Source: Dendrobates tinctorius (taxonomy: Eukaryota). From it: a DNA stretch of 64,000 nucleotides. Below, in pieces: positions 2,842 to 13,361 of this stretch. Numbering within the stretch: position 1 is the stretch's first letter; each line of letters opens with the position of its first letter. The notes beneath the pieces were generated by a model, which was not told the DNA's origin, did no database searches, and was given only the letters and a program-made list of their open reading frames with translations. Made by a program: the position numbers and the translations under genes. The stretch covers positions 27,032,001 to 27,096,000 of the forward strand of contig NW_027361700.1 in the NCBI RefSeq assembly GCF_039654945.1. The letters are read 5' to 3'.

Positions 2842-3167
2842 GCCTTAGAGTTACATGAACCCACAAAAGGGTACCCATAGAAGTTTATAATGCTCTACCA
2901 TACCTCTGTATGGATATAAGGAAGAATATCACCATAATACAGTGTGGCATGGAGCGTCATATGACAGCACACAGTCTGTACAGCTTGGATTCCTCAGAGT
3001 TGTATGAACTAAAGTTGAGCGAAACGGGTCGAAAAATTTCAAAAGTCGCCGACTTTTGGCAAAGTCGGGTTTCATGAAACGAAACCCGACCCTAGGATGG
3101 GTTGGCCACAAGGTCGGCGACTTACACGCCAAAGTCGCGTTCCAAAAGTTTGTTTTGCGCTCTTTTT

Positions 3168-3320
3168 CAGCCAATCAGGATCCACGGACACTGTGGGCAA
3201 CGTGATGACATAGGCACGGGTCACCACCATCTTTCAGAAGGGCATGCAAGTGATTGGCTTGCTTTGGTGGGCGTCACAGGGGGTATAAAAGGGCGTGCAC
3301 GCCGACCGCCATCTTACTTC
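3168..3320 (+). promoter_or_regulatory. Putative Pol II promoter of the hAT transposase
   Basis: CCAAT (~3171), reverse CCAAT ATTGG (~3253), TATAAAA (~3284-3290), YY1-like CCGCCATCTT (~3306-3315). Confidence 0.55.
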
Positions 3321-4065
3321 TGCCGATCTTAGCATAGGGAGAGGTTGCTGCTGATTCTGTAGGGAGAGCGTTAGGCAGGGAAGAAGGAAAAAAAACTGCT
3401 TCTGCTGCTAGCGATTTTGCCTGTACAACACACCAGTCACTGTGTGCAGTGCAAGGGGAGGCTATATAGTGGTGTATCAGTGGTGTTGGTTGTTGGGCTG
3501 CCTTCTAAGGCTTCCTGACATTCCTGCATTGCTGTTTACCCACTGCTCCGCAAACTGCTTTTTTAAAAGCAATCCCAATTTTTTTTTTTGTCCTGCTGAG
3601 GTACTGAGCGTGCATTTTTCACACCATACAGCGGTGTACGCTCCTCACACAGTACCGTGTAACGGCTGTTATCATAGCCACAGTGACATCTTACTTCTGC
3701 CGATCTTAGCATAGGGAGAGGTTGCTGCTGATTCTGTAGGGAGAGCGTTAGGCAGGGAAGAAGGAAAAAAAACTGCTTCTGCTGCTAGCGATTTTGCCTG
3801 TACAACACACCAGTCACTGTGTGCAGTGCAAGGGGAGGCTATATAGTGGTGTATCAGTGGTGTTGGTTGTTGGGCTGCCTTCTAAGGCTTCCTGACATTC
3901 CTGCATTGCTGTTTACCCACTGCTCCGCAAACTGCTTTTTTAAAAGCAATCCCAATTTTTTTTTTTTGTCCTGCTGAGGTACTGTGCGTGCATTTTTTCA
4001 CACCATACAGCGGTGTACGCTCCTCACACAGTACGGTGTAACGGCTGTTATCATAGCCACAGTGA
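3310..4065 (+). repeat. Near-perfect tandem duplication of ~377 bp inside the hAT
   Basis: 3310-3686 repeated at 3687-4065 (both begin CATCTTACTTCTGCCGATCTTAGC and end ATCATAGCCACAGTGA). Confidence 0.95.
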
Positions 4066-4198
4066 AGCTATCAGTGTGTCACTCTGTGAGAATAAGTCGA
4101 GGACATGTTCCGTTCTTACAGACCTGCACTCTAGGGAGATTCCTATTCTGCCCAATTCTACATACACCTTGTAGTTTGTGATACACTAGCCAATTTCT

Positions 4199-6465
4199 GC
4201 CTGTGACAGCGCTCAGATATTCAGTGGGCCTCACACAATCCAAAAGTGTCCAGTGTCCACAAGTGTCTGCAGAAATTCAAAATCTCCCTTATCCTCTAGT
4301 CACTTTGGTCACAGCTGTGCCATCGAGCCTGTGACAGCGCTCAGATATTCAGTGGGCCTCACACAATCCAAAAGTGTCCAGTGTCCACAAGTGTCTGCAG
4401 AAATTCAAAATCTCCCTTATCCCCTAGTCACTTTGGTCACAGCTGTGCCATCGAGCCTGTGACAGCGCTCAGATATTCAGTGGGCCTCACACAATCCAAA
4501 AGTGTCCAGTGTCCACAAGTGTCTGCAGAAATTCAAAATCTCCCTTATCCTCTAGTCACTTTGGTCACAGCTGTGCCATCGAGCCTGTGACACCGCTCAG
4601 ATATTCAGTGGGCCTCACACAATCCAAAAGTGTCCAGTGTCCACAAGTGTCTGCAGAAATTCAAAATCTCCCTTATCCTCTAGTCACTTTGGTCACAGCT
4701 GTGCCATCGAGCCTGTGACAGCGCTCAGATATTCAGTGGGCCTCACACAATCCAAAAGTGTCCAGTGTCCACAAGTGTCTGCAGAAATTCAAAATCTCCC
4801 TTATCCTCTAGTCACTTTGGTCACAGCTGTGCCATCGAGCCTGTGACAGCGCTCAGATATTCAGTGGGCCTCACACAATCCAAAAGTGTCCAGTGTCCTC
4901 AAGTGTCTGCAGAAATTCAAAATCTCCCTTATCCTCTAGTCACTTTGGTCACAGCTGTGCCATCGAGGCTGTGACAGCGCTCAGATATTCAGTGGGCCTC
5001 ACACAATCCAAAAGTGTAGAGTGTCCACTAGTGTGTGCAGAAATTCAAAATCTCCCTTATCCTCTAGTCACTTTGGTCACAGCTGTGCCATCGAGCCTGT
5101 GACAGCGCTCAGATATTCAGTGGGCCTCACACAATCTAAAAGTGTCCAGTGTCCACAAGTGTCTGCAGAAATTCAAAATCTCCCTTATCCTCTAGTCACT
5201 TTGGTCACAGCTGTGCCATCAAGCCTGTGACAGCGCTCAGATATTCGGTGGGCCTCACACAATCCAAAAGTGTCCAGTGTCCACAAGTGTCTGCAGAAAT
5301 TCAAAATCTCCCTTATCCTCTAGTCACTTTGGTCACAGCTGTGCCATCGAGCCTGTGACAGCGCTCAGATATTCAGTGGGCCTCACACAATCCAAAAGTG
5401 TCCAGTGTCCACAAGTGTCTGCAGAAATTCAAAATCTCCCTTATCCTCTAGTCACTTTGGTCACAGCTGTGCCATCGAGCCTGTGACAGCGCTCAGATAT
5501 TCAGTGGGCCTCACACAATCCAAAAGTGTCCAGTGTCCACTAGTGTGTGCAGAAATTCAAAATCTCCCTTATCCTCTAGTCACTTTGGTCACAGCTGTGC
5601 CATCGAGCCTGTGACAGCGCTCAGATATTCAGTGGGCCTCACACAATCCAAAAGTGTCCAGTGTCCACAAGTGTCTGCAGAAATTCAAAATCTCCCTTAT
5701 CCTCTAGTCACTTTGGTCACAGCTGTGCCATCGAGCCTGTGACAGCGCTCAGATATTCAGTGGGCCTCACACAATCCAAAAGTGTCCAGTGTCCACAAGT
5801 GTCTGCAGAAATTCAAAATCTCCCTTATCCTCTAGTCACTTTGGTCACAGCTGTGCCATCGAGCCTGTGACAGCGCTCAGATATTCAGTGGGCCTCACAC
5901 AATCCAAAAGTGTCCAGTGTCCACAAGTGTCTGCAGAAATTCAAAATCTCCCTTATCCTCTAGTCACTTTGGTCACAGCTGTGCCATCGAGCCTGTGACA
6001 GTGCTCAGATATTCAGTGGGCCTCACACAATCCAAAAGTGTCCAGTGTCCACTAGTGTGTGCAGAAATTCAAAGTCTCCCTTATCCTCTAGTCACTTTGG
6101 TCACAGCTGTGCCATCGAGCCTGTGACAGCGCTCAGATATTCAGTGGGCCTCACACAATCCAAAAGTGTCCAGCGTCCACAAGTGTCTGCAGAAATTCAA
6201 AATCTCCCTTATCCTCTAGTCACTTTGGTCACAGCTGTGCCATCGAGCCTGTGACAGCGCTCAGATATTCGGTGGGCCTCACACAATCCAAAAGTGTCCA
6301 GTGTCCACAAGTGTCTGCAGAAATTCAAAATCTCCCTTATCCTCTAGTCACTTTGGTCACAGCTGTGCCATCGAGCCTGTGACAGCGCTCAGATATTCAG
6401 GGGGCCTCACACAATCCAAAAGTGTCCAGTGTCCACAAGTGTCTGCAGAAATTCAAAATCTCCCC
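4199..6465 (+). repeat. 128-bp tandem satellite, ~17.7 near-identical copies, inside the hAT
   Basis: Unit GCCTGTGACAGCGCTCAGATATTC...GGTCACAGCTGTGCCATCGA recurs every 128 nt; near-identical 69-aa ORFs recur every 128 nt. Confidence 0.98.
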
Positions 6466-6540
6466 TGTCCTATAGACACCTTGTACCTTGTTTTACATTA
6501 CTATATAGTTTGTTGGATTTTGTCTACATTTCTACCAAAA

Positions 6541-9500
6541 ATGAGGAAGGCTGGTGGAAGAGGCCGTGGAATTGGGCGGGGGTTGGCAGCTGGTAATGAT
6601 GGTGTTAGTGGTGGATCTGATGGTAGTGGCAAGAGCAAAATAGGACCGAATGCAGGAGGTGTTGAGCCTGCGTCATCGCCTGGCTCCATAAGGCTTCGAA
6701 GGCTTAGTTTTCTAGGAGTTGGCAAACCGCTTTTAAAGCCAGAGCATTAGGAAAAAGTTTTGTCTTACATTGCTGACTCAGCCTCCAGCTCTATCGCCTC
6801 CTCTTCTTCAGTTGTAAAAAGTAAAAGCACTGAGTCGTCATAGGAGGCTCATGTTCATGAACCACACCTTTCCTTGTGTCCTTCACCACAACCAAGATTG
6901 AAGGATGACGCAGGCCATACTACTGATTACTCCATGGAGCTGTTTTCACATACCATGCCTGGATTATCAAGTGAAATGGTGAATTACCCAGGCCAAGATG
7001 AATCTGACATGGAGTGCACTGATGCACAGCCGCTGATGGATGATTCTGCTGATACATTCACTCAGAGCACTACATTGTCCTCGCAGTGTACAGAGCCAGA
7101 TTCTGACCCTGATGAGACTCACGTGCCCCTTCCCGCACACTATACTACCATACACGGTGACACAGAGGAAGGTGCACATGACATAGAAGAGGAGGTGATG
7201 GATGACCCAGTTGTTGGCATCCATTGGGGGAAGAGGGTGCTGCTTCCAATAGCTCAGATGAGGAGCATCCACAGCAGACATCGACATCGCAACAGCTGTT
7301 ATCTGGCAGGCCCGGAGCACTCCAAAGACAGGTTCCAAACATCAAAAGAGTTGCTGGACAGCTTGTCCAGAGGGTCAAAAGATCACAGCGTGCTAGGCCG
7401 CAAAATGTCTGCCAAAGTAGGAAGAGTGCAGTGTGGCACTTTTTTGAACAAAATCCTCATGATCAGGCCAAGGTTATCTGTAAGAAGTGCGCAAAGACCT
7501 TTTGCCGAGGGAAAAATCTGAAAAATTTGAATACCAGTTGCATGCTTAGACATTTAACCAGCATGCACTTGCAAGCGTGGACACAACACCAAACCTCAAG
7601 TGCCACATGTGCAACTGATCACAACGAAGGTAGTCAGCAACGCTACATTGTTTCCCCCACTGTAAGCCCACCGGTTAGCACAGCAGCAAATGTTGAGGTG
7701 TCGTTGCAAGGCCACAGCAGTCAGGGAATCCCACTGTTATATCAACGAAAGACTGATTCTAGGCCATCAGAAAGAACACCAACTCCATCACCATCATCAA
7801 CCCTCTCTCAGTCCGCCCAGTCCACCGCTACTTCCACCATATGCAGCTCTCAAGTCCAGCTCACCCTCCCAGACACTATGAGTAGGTCAAGAAAGTACTC
7901 AGTCTCTCATCCGCGTACACTGGGTTTGAACGCCCACATTGCCAAACTAATCTCGTTTGAGATGATGCCCTTTCGGTTGGTGGAAAGCACAGCTTTCCGC
8001 GAACTCATGGCCTACGCAGTACCACGCTATGACCTACCCAGTCGCCACTTCTTCTCTCGCAAAGCCATCCCAGCCCTCCACCATCATGAAAGACCGCATT
8101 GTCCATGCACTCAAGCACTCAGTGAGCGGAAAGGTGCACCTCACAACTGATGCATGGTCCAGTCGGCATGGCCAGGGCCGTTACGTGTCCATCACTGCGC
8201 ACTGGGTTAATGTGGTGGATGCAGGGTCCACAGGGGATAGCGGTGGTGGGACAGTGCTGCCTAGCCCACGGTATAGGAAACAGTTGGCTGTAGGCGTTCG
8301 ACCCTCCTCCTCCTCCAGAAGCGAAAGCTCGTCCACAGAGCGCAGTCGTACGAGCACTCCATCTGCAGCTGCCACTGTTGCACACGATGTGTCCCCCTAT
8401 CGAGCAGCTAATGGAAAGCATCAGCAGGCTGTGTTGCAGATGATGTGTTTGGGCGACAGACACACCGCCGAGGTGCTGGCCGAGTACTTTCAGCGACAAA
8501 CTGAGTCATGGCTGGGCAGTGTACATCTTGAGGCAGGCAAGGTAGTTAGTGATAACGGCCGTAATTTTGTGGCAGCCATAGCCCTTTCAAAACTCAGCCA
8601 CATACCTTGCTTGGCTCACACCTTGAACCTGGTGGTGCAGTGCTTCCTCAAAAATTATCCAGAGTTAACAGCCCTGCTCCAGAAGGTGCGAAGACTGTGC
8701 GCGCACATCCGCCGGTCGCCTGTACACTCCGTTCGTATGCAGAAGCTGCAGCGATTGCTCCACCTTCCCAACCACCGCCTCATTATCGACATTGCAACAA
8801 GGTGGAACTCCACCCTGCACATGGTGGAGCGGCTGTGCGAGCAGAGGCAGGCCATAATGCATTTGTGGGAGGATACACGGCCAGGCACTTTGAGAGCAGA
8901 CATGGAGTTGACAGGTGTGCAGTGGTCGAAGCTGAAAGACCTCTGTAAAGTCCTTCAGTGTTTTGAGGAATGCACATGGCTGGTAAGCGCAGACGATGCC
9001 ATCCTAAGCATGAGCATCCCACTTATGCGTCTGCTCATGCAAACTTTGACGCACCTTAAGGAGCAGGCGTCTGCAGCCAATGTTGACGAGGAGGGAATCC
9101 TTGATGACATTCAGCCATTGTCTGCTCAGGGACCTCTCCTGGACGAGGTGGAGGAAGAAGAGGAGGAGGAGGATGATGATGGGGATGATTACTTAGGGGA
9201 GGAGGATGCATCTCGTGGGGCAAGTGAAAATGTTGGCATGGCAAGGTCTGGTACAGGGTTTGTGTGTGACTGGAGGGATGTGGATTTGCCAGAAAGTGCT
9301 CCTCCAAACAGCACTCGCAGTGCATCATTGACACCGGGAACATTGGCCCACATGTCAGATTATGCCTTGCAGATCCTAAAAAGGGACCCCCGCATTGCCA
9401 AAATGATGAACGATGACGACTACTGGTTGGCCAGCATCCTGGATCCACGCTATAAAGGCAAATTACAAAACATCATGCCACAGGAGAACCTTGACCTAAT

Positions 9501-10050
9501 ATTGGCTAATAAACAAGCAAGTCTGGTAAATCGGTTGCTTGAGGCATTCCCAGCACACAGCAGCGGTGATGGTTCTCACACGAGCCGTACAGGCCGGGGG
9601 CAGCTTGGCAGAGGTGTTCGTGGTGCACACAGCAGAAGTGGCGTTGGAGACAGGGGTTTCATGACAATGTTGTGGACTGATTTTTCAAGTACCGCTCACA
9701 CAACTGGTAATACTGCATCGATGGAAAGTGACAGGAGACAGCAGTTGTCAACTATGGTTACAAACTACTTTTCCTCCCATATCGATGTTCTCCCACACAG
9801 GTCATTCCCCTTTGACTATTGGGCCGCTAAACTGGACACCTGGCCTGAATTGGCCCAATATGCCTTACAGGAGCTCGCTTGCCCAGCTGCAAGTGTGCTA
9901 TCGGAAAGAGTCTTCAGTGCAGCTGGATCAATCCTGACAGAAAAAAGGACCCGTCTGTCAACCCAAAATGTGGATGATCTAACCTTCATTAAAATGAACC
10001 ACGCATGGGTTTCCAAGGATTTTGTCCCACCTTCCCCTGATGATACATAG
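6541..10050 (+). pseudogene. hAT transposase (BED zinc finger, DDE core, hATC dimerisation domain), disrupted
   Basis: ATG 6541 (MRKAGGRGRG); in-frame TAG at 6748 and 6841; frameshifts near 7225 and 8085; BED finger SAVWHFF..CKKC..LRHLTSMH; LTTDAW, VSDNG, CLAHTLNL, TRWNST, LDPRYK, and C-terminal WPELAQYA..PAASVLSERVFSAAG..RTRLS. Confidence 0.93.
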
Positions 10051-10248
10051 GGTGACAGAAAAATGGCTTGCTTTGGTCCACCTCTTCCTGGGACGTGACC
10101 TATTTCACCTTTTGCATCAGCTGAATGTCCAACATCAACATATGCCACTTTCTAAAACTCCCTAACTGTGCTTCCCCCCCCCCCATGGCCGGGGTCACCA
10201 CCTAGCGCACGACACCGTGCGAGTGCCGTTGCCCTGGACAGGTGGGTA

Positions 10249-10392
10249 GGCCGACTCTTGGGCGCGGGCACTGGCACAGGGTCCCTCATAGTGCAATCAA
10301 GTGTCTCTGACGGTGGTGGTGCACACCCGCCGTCAGACACACCGCCGTACTATGAGGGGCCCAGTGCCAGTACCGACGCCCACGAGTGGGCC
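10249..10392. repeat. Imperfect GC-rich hairpin downstream of the transposase stop
   Basis: Left arm ACTCTTGGGCGCGGGCACTGGCACAGGGTCCCTCATAGT..GTGTCTCTGACGG pairs with right arm CCGTCAGACAC..ACTATGAGGGGCCCAGTGCCAGTACCGACGCCCACGAGT. Confidence 0.85.
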
Positions 10393-10471
10393 CCCCTTGC
10401 TTGGGCAGGGCCCCAGCATTTGCAATCTTTACCTCTCCCTGCTCGTCCACTGTGTAGTCTGGGCCGTCAAA

Positions 10472-11002
10472 TCCATACTGTGCCTGACACCGTCTGAGCC
10501 TGCCTCCTGATGTATAGACATATATTTTGAATGTGTACGCTATCCATACATGTTATCCGGGGATACGGTACCCTTTCTCACCTTTGTGCAATCACGTGCA
10601 AGCCATACTGGGCCTAACACCGTCTGAGCCTGCCTCCTGATGTATAGACATATATTTTGAATGTGTACGCTATCCATACATGTTATCTGGGGATACGGTA
10701 CCCTTTCTCACCTTTGTGCAATCACGTGTAATCCATACTGGGCCTAACACCGTCTGAGCCTGCCTCCTGATGTATAGACATATATTTTGAATGTGTACGC
10801 TATCCATACATGTTATCCGGGGATACGGTACCCTTTCTCACCTTTGTGCAATCACGTGCAAGCCATACTGGGCCTATACCGTCTGAGCCTGCCTCCTGAT
10901 GTATAGACATATATTGAATGTGTACGCTATCCATACATGTTTTCCGGGGATACGGTACCCTTTCTCATCTTTGTGCAATCCCGTGTAATCCATACTGGGC
11001 CT
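10472..11002 (+). repeat. ~130-bp tandem repeat, ~4 copies, in the hAT 3' region
   Basis: CCGTCTGAGCCTGCCTCCTGATGTATAGAC at ~10490, 10620, 10750, 10879. Confidence 0.95.
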
Positions 11003-11109
11003 GAGAACGGCTGGCGAGCTGTTAAGCAAGCTACAGCACCTGTGGTTTGCACACGTAAGTTTTTCATTTTTTCAGGAATGACGGTTAGGCCTAATTCCGG
11101 AACTGCGGT

Positions 11110-11585
11110 TGACCTGCACTTACTGGGAAATCATTGTTCGCGGGTAATAATTGTAATCACAGATCCCCATCACTAACGTTGTTCAGCGGGTTATCTGCAC
11201 CTGTAAGCGACAAACGCTGGCCTTTTCAGTGTAGCGCACATGCAGCCACGGACATGTAAGGGCATGACCCACCAGTTATTGGCCAATCTCATGTGCCAGA
11301 GCCTCACGTGTCCCTCTAGTAAGCCGGACTCGGACCGCGGGGCATGACGTAGTCTCGTTCGTTAACGGAATTAAGCTTGCAATGTGTGCATCTTTTCTGT
11401 AGCTTGCATGGTTGAGGTTTCCCAGGTGGAGTCAAATTAAACCGTAGGCTCCACTCCTGGTGGTGCCCTTCTGGACATTCCTTTATGGTTCAGCTTTGCA
11501 ACCATACTGCCCACGTAAAACAAACACTTTGCCTTCATGAACGCTGTTTGGAGGGGCATGACTCGTGGGAATAACGCCGCCCAAT
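11110..11585 (-). pseudogene. Degenerate 18S rRNA fragment (3' half of 18S) captured inside the hAT
   Basis: Plus strand matches, in order, the reverse complement of conserved 18S blocks recalled from memory: GCACTTACTGGGAA, GATCCCCATCAC, CAGTGTAGCGC..TGCAGCC..GGACAT.TAAGGGCAT, GTCTCGTTCGTTA.CGGAATTAA, GAGTCAAATTAA.CCG.AGGCTCCACTCCTGGTGGTGCCCTTC, TTCAGCTTTGCAACCATACT, TGGGAATAACGCCGCC; many substitutions and two internal deletions or replacements. Confidence 0.92.
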
Positions 11586-11690
11586 CAGTTAACCTGCTAG
11601 AGAGATCCTTCGTTGCTCGCAAGCATGACATCACACTCCCTAGGAAGAAGGTAATGCCACTGTGGCGACCGTACTCCTGGGGGCGACACA

Positions 11691-11980
11691 AGTGCACTGA
11701 TGCCCAGCCACTGCTCGATGAATCTGCTGGTACATTGACCCAGACCACTACATTCCCCTCGCACGCTACACGGCCTGAATCTGACCCTGAGGAAACTCAT
11801 GTTACCCTTCCCATATACAGTTCCATCTTACACGGTGACAAAGAGGAAGCTGCAGATGAAAGTGCAGGTTCGGCCCACCCGCCATCAGACACACCACCGT
11901 ACTATCAGGGGCCCTGTGCCAGTGCCGTCGCCAACAAGTGGGCCCCCCCTGCTTGCTCAGGATCACAGCACTTGCAAGGT
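11691..11980 (+). repeat. Diverged internal duplications of hAT segments 7013-7180 and 10325-10425
   Basis: Translates CTDAQPLLDESAGTLTQTT..ESDPEETHV versus CTDAQPLMDDSADTFTQST..DSDPDETHV, then HPPSDTPPYYQGP versus HPPSDTPPYYEGP. Confidence 0.9.
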
Positions 11981-12089
11981 TGAAATACTGTGCAGTGAGA
12001 TGGAAGATGGGAACGACGAGGAGTCCAGACTAGTACAGGGATTCCCTAGCGAGGAGACTTATTTCATTGTTTTCAATGTTGGGACAGCA

Positions 12090-12515
12090 ATTTTTGGGGA
12101 GCACTATACTCTGGAGAATGATAGATGGGGCCCACCATACACTGGAACATTCCAAAGGTGGACATCAGACACTGGAGCAGCATTTACAGGGCCCATTATA
12201 CACTAGAGCATTAGAAATGGGGCCCATTATGTTTGGAGCATTATTTGGGACCATAAGACAGTGGAGCTTCATCCATGGGGACCAACATATACTGTAGCAT
12301 TATGTGGAGCTCATCATATACTGTTTCAAACATTATATGGGACCAATGATTCTGTATGGAGAAATAGATGGGCCTCGTCATGAGATGTAAAAAGTGAAGT
12401 ATTTTTCATTGTACTATACCGCTATTTCTCTGCCGTATCGGAGCATGATGAGTTGTGGTATGTGTTAAAGGGGCGCTCTTTCTCCCAGGGCACATGAAAA
12501 CCAGGAGCCAGCCCT
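12090..12515. repeat. Degenerate ~36-bp minisatellite and MITE remnant nested in the hAT
   Basis: Recurring GGGCCCATTATAC.CTGGAGCATTA motif; ends in CCAGGAGCCAGCCCT. Confidence 0.55.
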
Positions 12516-13361
12516 CCCCCCCCACAACTTTAGCCAAATAACCCCCATTTTTCAGTGCGTAACTTGTATTATGAAGTTAATTAAGGTTGACAAGCTTAAG
12601 TAAGAAGAATTGATGCTTTTGGCATTCAAATGGGCACTGTAGGTGTGTTTCCTGTCCTCCTCTCACTGCCGACTTTTATTCCCCATTGACTTACATTGGG
12701 TTTCGTGTTTCGGGACGACCCCGACTTTTCCCTATTATCAGACGATCTTGCTCGACCCGACTTTTGGAAAAGTCGGGTTTCACGAAACGAAACTCGACCC
12801 TAAAAAAACAAAAGTCGCTCAACTCTAGTATGAACCAAATGAATCCACCTATAATACTCGTACCCATAGAGGTTTTTAATGACCAACTGTACCTCTGTAT
12901 AAATCTAAGGCAAAATAGTTGAATAGAACCCTTGTATGGGAAGAACTATATAGCAGCACAGAAAATCTATACAGGATTGCACTATGGAGCACCATATGAC
13001 CATGTTCATCAATCCTTCTCCTTCTTAGACTTGATTGCTGTAGCAAGTATTATTTCCCTAAAAATGTAAGGTATATCTTTCCAGCTAATTAGAATCTGAT
13101 CTATGTGAGTTTTTTCCTACATGATAAAAGTAATCCATATACACATTCACAAACTTTGCATCAAAAGTTAGCTTTATTGAAAGGACGTTATAGTTAGCAG
13201 TACCCTATACAAGTAGTATATGATAAATACACCTCTTAATATTTAAAATACATCTCTCAGCAGGAAAAAAGCATAGAATTAAAACATGGCTTGTATAGGA
13301 ACATCATAATATGTTAAGAAGGTAGCAGCTTTGATGTGAATTGTAAATTTGATGGGACTGA

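Follow-up and report, generated by a model that had tools for sequence, protein, structure and literature searches.

The mobile elements known to contain ribosomal DNA have been catalogued in a 2024 review of rDNA and transposable elements, which lists 5S-promoter SINEs, the Cassandra and Ajax TRIMs, SINE28 with its 28S segment and the spacer repeats of Pokey; no 18S piece and no hAT element appear among these rDNA-derived modules (PMC10946416). Pokey, a piggyBac transposon of Daphnia, is the closest analogue of the frog element described here, since both are transposase-encoding DNA transposons with internal rDNA-derived sequence beside tandem repeats, carried family-wide (PMC10946416). However, the Pokey module derives from the intergenic spacer and not from a mature rRNA, whereas the frog element carries 18S, and Pokey targets 28S genes, which explains its acquisition of rDNA, whereas the frog hAT lies outside rDNA in the sequence analysed here. 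The mammalian SINE28, derived from 28S rRNA, and the 5S-derived SINE3/AmnSINE1 and Cassandra and Ajax TRIMs likewise contain an rRNA-derived segment that is fixed in the consensus and dispersed genome-wide (PMC10946416). These are retrotransposons, in contrast to the hAT, and their 5S modules supply a polymerase III promoter. Amplification of host sequence inside an element is also seen in Pack-MULEs, in other transduplicating DNA transposons and in capture by Helitrons. Captures of the Pack-MULE type are often antisense and can yield small RNAs (Jiang et al. 2004, cited in the review). Pack-MULEs are non-autonomous members of the Mutator superfamily whose cargo consists of fragments of protein-coding genes, whereas the frog hAT has a transposase gene and an rRNA piece. 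Finally, the dispersed rRNA pseudogene fragments that repeat maskers label as rRNA resemble our piece in being partial, decayed and non-functional 18S outside the rDNA arrays, but each of them is a single independent event, whereas here one event was multiplied by transposition, and the copies seen share their end points and deletions.

We analysed a window of 64,000 nucleotides from the poison frog Dendrobates tinctorius, in which the first-pass annotation had noticed a hAT element with an 18S piece lying antisense to its transposase. Both parts of that description hold, with the transposase on the plus strand and the Rfam match to 18S on the minus strand (Table 1). The annotation had also known of no described hAT family carrying 18S. 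Our full-text literature searches found no description of one either, the poison-frog genome papers that we consulted do not mention one, and none is listed in the 2024 review (PMC10946416); the 18S-carrying hAT family is apparently undescribed so far.

Table 1 Features of the hAT element and of its 18S piece, in window positions
Feature	Positions	Strand	Basis and remarks
Whole hAT element	3010..12827	+	9,818 bp; TIRs and TSD; drop in contig depth; flank divergence of other copies
Left TSD, GTATGAAC	3002..3009		Identical to 12828-12835
Right TSD, GTATGAAC	12828..12835		8/8 match to 3002-3009
5' TIR, TAAAGTTGAGCG	3010..3021	+	12 nt; 11/12 complementary to 3' TIR
3' TIR (reverse complement TAGAGTTGAGCG)	12816..12827	-	12 nt
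Transposase gene, BED zinc finger and hAT C-terminal dimerisation domain	6934..10050	+	Pfam, tblastn; frame breaks near 7220 and 8087
144-bp hairpin	10249..10392		Arms of 44 nt, 84% complementary; just past the transposase stop
105-bp direct repeat, left copy	10321..10425	+	85% identical to 11873-11977
130-bp tandem array	10473..11002	+	4.1 copies, 95% matches
Segment deleted in a recurrent family variant	11042..12022		981-bp internal deletion including the 18S piece; joint 11041->12023 in runs X1, X11 and X15
A-rich tract on the rRNA-sense strand	11060..11072	-	Read off the sequence; just 3' of the 18S homology
Degenerate 18S rRNA fragment	11081..11512	-	Rfam SSU_rRNA_eukarya, model positions 1118-1666 of 1831; common to many family copies
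Possible further 18S-derived stretch	11513..11585	-	Short motif of vertebrate 18S; no Rfam match for 11500-11700 searched alone
Diverged duplicate of 7013-7181, DNA that codes for the transposase N terminus	11691..11859	+	blastn 79%; tblastn P0002 residues 27-82
105-bp direct repeat, right copy	11873..11977	+	Self-comparison, 85% to 10321-10425

The element shows several features of the hAT superfamily: an 8-bp target site duplication (TSD), short terminal inverted repeats (TIRs), a transposase with a dimerisation domain and, as in many hATs, a BED zinc finger, and many copies that end at the same TIR. The TSD had been described as still exact, which the identity of all eight bases on the two sides bears out. 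To place the element in the context of its family, contigs assembled from four sequencing runs, representing the same species, a second species and a third species, were aligned to window positions 9000-13200. In DNA run X1 from the same species, contig depth summed over each position fell from more than 1.5 million to 4 across 12807-12948, and the contigs of other copies exited at 12827-12829 into unrelated flanks, which confirms the end of the element. No second copy was found elsewhere within the 64-kb window. Pack-MULE elements have long TIRs, TSDs of 9-10 bp and no transposase gene, whereas this element has hAT-type ends, an 8-bp TSD and a transposase gene; it behaves as a transduplicating DNA transposon, yet is not a Pack-MULE. 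A G-rich minisatellite with units of 24-50 bp (~65-77% matches) occupies 2035-2654, about 350 bp to the left of the insertion site.

The transposase matched the Pfam families PF02892 (BED, E 2e-10) and PF05699 (hAT dimerisation, E 7e-12). Its nearest proteins are from Ranitomeya, at 70-79% identity, and more distant frog homologues are annotated as ZBED4/6-like. When these homologues were compared with the window by tblastn, the matching pieces fell in frames 1, 3 and 1 and abutted in both protein and DNA coordinates, indicating two frame breaks in the transposase of this copy; both changes of frame occur without gaps relative to the homologues. The window copy is non-autonomous unless the two frame breaks are assembly errors. 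The interruption of the frame affects the autonomy of this copy and not its membership of the hAT superfamily.

When all 64 kb were searched against Rfam at gathering thresholds, a single match was returned, to SSU_rRNA_eukarya, with a score of 98.4 bits (gathering score 50) and an E value of 2.9e-25 calculated for the whole window. This is the 18S piece, and no further rRNA pieces were found within the element. The first-pass annotation had read the segment from the sequence alone as conserved 18S blocks in the correct order on the minus strand, with many substitutions and internal deletions, and had proposed a comparison with SSU rRNA models as a check. The Rfam alignment gives the significant SSU match and agrees on each of these points. 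The conserved blocks are collinear, and many base pairs are flagged as non-standard. The 432 bases span 549 model positions, so that ~117 model positions are missing; most of the loss is a compression of 196 model positions into 100 bases, accompanied by smaller gaps of 6, 8 and 6. Counted by hand on this alignment, the highly conserved block 1 contains 14 mismatches in 91 columns; it also holds a run of 26 bases that matches the Rfam consensus exactly. Divergence from 18S is roughly 15-25% in the conserved blocks. A functional 18S gene is not compatible with a partial match to the model, broken conserved helices and 98 bits over 432 nt. The piece is a real, decayed and partial 18S copy, amounting to about one third of the gene and no longer able to fold as rRNA, and is neither a chance resemblance nor a working gene.

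The extent of the piece differs from that first given, 11110-11585. Rfam extends the homology on the left and supports it as far as 11512, whereas the last 73 positions of the earlier interval, which contain a short motif of vertebrate 18S, are a possible further 18S-derived stretch, and a cmscan of 11500-11700 alone against Rfam returned nothing. On the other side, 10960-11100 searched alone gave only noise. The A-rich tract at this side, which follows the homology in the rRNA sense, could be what is left of a poly(A) tail if the rRNA fragment was retroposed, or could be due to chance. A 103-aa open reading frame overlaps the piece, and a protein search with it for contigs of other copies yielded no candidates.

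The piece lies in a composite part of the element. The two 105-bp direct repeats bracket a block of 1.45 kb (10426-11872) that contains the 18S piece, the 130-bp array and the duplicate of transposase-coding DNA. Upstream of the transposase, a second tandem array with a 128-bp unit (4199-6483, 17.9 copies, 97%) accounts for nearly a quarter of the element's length. Both arrays are homogeneous, at 97% and 95% for the 128-bp and 130-bp units, respectively, as had been remarked from the sequence. We searched the borders of the 18S piece for traces of its insertion. The best exact repeat that could represent a TSD was 8 nt long and was equalled in 98 of 500 shuffles, and is thus not significant; clear microhomology was not found at the borders either.

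Several other features of the element are recorded here as side observations. One arm of the hairpin beyond the transposase stop is repeated at 11873-11977 and, in inverted orientation, at 11887-11949. The hairpin gave sub-threshold matches on both strands to plant and insect miRNA precursors (MIR8670, 42 bits against a gathering score of 150; mir-306, 35 against 52), and it is probably a generic long hairpin and not a miRNA. Near the 5' end of the element, a 379-bp unit is duplicated at 99% identity (3310-3686 and 3687-4065), and each unit contains one weak match to the histone 3' stem-loop model (3551-3595 and 3928-3973; 20-21 bits, gathering score 34). The 3' part of the element at 12000-12360 consists of degenerate repeats of ~40-90 bp (GGGCCC...ACTGGAGCA-like units), and many rearranged joints and loose ends of other copies fall within it.

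The proposal that the piece was dispersed with the family as one of its fixed components could be examined directly in the aligned contigs. In run X1, summed contig depth, which is not a copy number, was 0.6-1.9 million across the element and 0.68-0.84 million over 11115-11537 within the region of the 18S piece, compared with 4.02 on the single-copy right flank. Conversion of these depths into copy number was tried and rejected, as the result would exceed one copy per 64 kb by far. Dozens of distinct contigs (50-100) were present in this run at each variable site. Two long contigs cross the whole piece, both at 98% identity and with 0 gaps: a 544-nt contig from run X11 of the same species (11105-11645, 11 differences) and a 610-nt contig from run X15 of the second species (11014-11623, 12 differences). 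Such gap-free contigs across the entire piece and both of its junctions mean that other copies share the junctions and deletions of the window copy. The third species has a diverged version, with lower depth over the 18S bins and contigs elsewhere in the element that are ~86-92% identical to the window copy. A broader search for 31-mers of 11081-11600 recovered them from 16 runs of the species, representing 8 samples and 5 studies, and gave a weak signal in the third species. An exact scan of metagenome and viral contig collections with a 28-nt stretch characteristic of the piece in its decayed form gave 0 matches. The 18S segment is thus a host-derived fragment between the TIRs that is common to family copies and part of the family sequence, not a property of one copy, and the same gap-free arrangement in other copies of this species and of the second agrees with the spread originally proposed. 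The family is very abundant in this frog and its relatives, and the 18S piece is a fixed internal part of it. Transcription of the family was considered from runs presumed to be RNA and rejected, because their contigs are unstranded and carry-over of DNA could explain them.

Had other copies lacked the fragment, the first-pass annotation would have regarded the piece as a one-off insertion. Contigs from three species carry it, and the forms that lack it are rarer and are internal-deletion variants. Besides the recurrent 981-bp deletion listed in Table 1, several joints that lead from near 10351-10390 to 11907-11944 remove the entire block between the 105-bp repeats. The depth of deletion variants and of the full form was 56 versus 132 in X11 and 14 versus 15 in X15. 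In X1, depth over the 18S piece was about half that of the neighbouring parts, a kind of dip that is not interpretable on conserved genes. A sizeable share of the family copies may thus be without the 18S piece.

The annotation had further held that the rRNA piece is far older than this insertion, and the comparison of divergences leads to the same view. The window copy differs from the family contigs by about 0.6-2%, whereas the piece is ~15-25% from 18S; a copy only ~1-2% from the main sequences of its family indicates that the capture long predates this insertion. Individual positions add to this picture. The letter of the Rfam consensus is found at 11486 and 11405 in the family majority and in the third species, but not in the window copy. 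At 11434 and 11439, the window copy has the consensus letter and the majority in the same species differs, with a letter that occurs in no third-species contig; 11394 shows the same pattern, less certainly. This split of consensus letters between the two lineages at 11486, 11405, 11434 and 11439 indicates that both descend from a more 18S-like ancestor that was already inside the element. The neighbouring internal duplicates, at 79% and 85% identity, have decayed to a degree similar to that of the 18S piece.

A separate observation concerns the type of change. Over 9000-12827, transitions are about half as frequent as transversions among the differences between the window copy and the family contigs in each of the four runs, which is the expectation for random change and unusual for vertebrate repeats. 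The ratio may be artefactual and result from the counting of places across subfamilies that have diverged.

The data above establish the identity of the piece, the boundaries of the element, the carriage of the piece across the family and in other species and the contrast in age, whereas the mechanism of capture and the selective neutrality of the piece are inferred. A partial copy of the 18S gene would have entered the internal non-coding region of a hAT element in an ancestor of the present family, possibly by template switching during gap repair after excision. Patchwork or filler DNA is known from deletion derivatives of hAT and P elements. The array, the stray coding duplicate and the 105-bp repeats around the piece form a patchwork of that kind. 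A second possible route would be nested retroposition, in which a polyadenylated rRNA fragment inserted into a master copy. Since the borders of the piece show neither a TSD nor clear microhomology, we retain both routes. The family has since risen to very high copy number in this frog and its relatives, with the piece copied along, and the window copy is a recent insertion that still has its intact TSD and is itself dead through the two breaks in its transposase frame. We assign a probability of about 0.8 to the reading that the piece is a decayed 18S fragment captured in a hAT ancestor, copied with the element and now neutral passenger DNA. The assembly of deletion variants without the piece in three runs indicates that it is dispensable for spread. 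A hint against neutrality comes from the CpG content: the observed/expected ratio is 0.5-0.8 over most of the element, compared with 0.16-0.30 in the flanking DNA, and reaches its highest value, 0.80, in the 18S piece despite the heavy divergence of the piece from 18S, which is more than expected for long-methylated junk.

This relative richness in CpG is one of several observations that could be explained if the 18S module had been kept because it is useful to the element, whether by supplying a polyadenylation signal in the 3' UTR, by pairing with 18S and so tuning translation, or as a source of rRNA-complementary small RNAs. The first-pass annotation had itself named pairing with ribosomes, entry into small-RNA pathways and neutral cargo as options. 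The piece is antisense to the transposase, it includes the 26-base run identical to the consensus, and it has been retained in the families of at least three species. Moreover, the plus strand contains no AATAAA from the transposase stop at 10050 to the end of the element, and apart from ATTAAA at 11436, which falls inside the 18S piece, no variant signal follows the stop. Against this, the piece is heavily decayed, with its mismatches scattered, and the variants that have lost it in three runs suggest that it is dispensable when transposase is supplied in trans; with a family this abundant, its DNA may be present in the runs presumed to be RNA, and their contigs are unstranded. We know of no promoter within the 18S region carried here. 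On balance we consider retention for its usefulness unlikely. The more specific proposal that the antisense module has been long retained because its transcript interacts with the ribosome or the small-RNA machinery, through 18S pairing, nucleolar routing or small RNAs, appears to us very improbable; if it were true, the captured rRNA would be partly responsible for the great success of this vertebrate DNA transposon family.

Two further explanations concern the source and the reality of the piece. It might not derive from the rDNA of this frog, having arrived with the transposon by horizontal transfer or having been copied from an old rDNA pseudogene, in which case its divergence would overstate the age of the capture. 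The 98% identity of the second species over the region could reflect transfer or close kinship, and transfers of hAT and Tc1/mariner elements into poison frogs have been proposed (PMC6278860). By hand count, the substitutions in block 1 also lack an excess of transitions. However, universally conserved 18S positions and helices are broken, so that the piece is decayed with respect to any functional 18S, and the element's own internal duplicates are similarly diverged. A foreign or pseudogene source is accordingly quite improbable in our estimate. Since no second element or 18S piece was found within the 64-kb window, the piece might be supposed to be peculiar to the window copy, as a one-off insertion or an assembly artefact, but many distinct contigs from several samples and species show it in the same context. 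This refutes the supposition, and we give it a negligible chance. The reading of the piece as captured, decayed and now neutral 18S is the one that we adopt.

The 18S module of this hAT joins the short list of mobile elements with rDNA-derived parts. On present evidence the piece is most likely passenger DNA, and the 18S-carrying hAT is a curiosity and not a new mechanism. Its practical consequences follow from its dispersal: 18S-like loci scattered by the family can inflate rRNA counts in the repeat annotation of frog genomes, can attract the rRNA filtering of RNA-seq data and can blur the mapping of rDNA by hybridisation. The family also amounts to a natural experiment on whether complementarity to rRNA, borne on an mRNA, has any effect.
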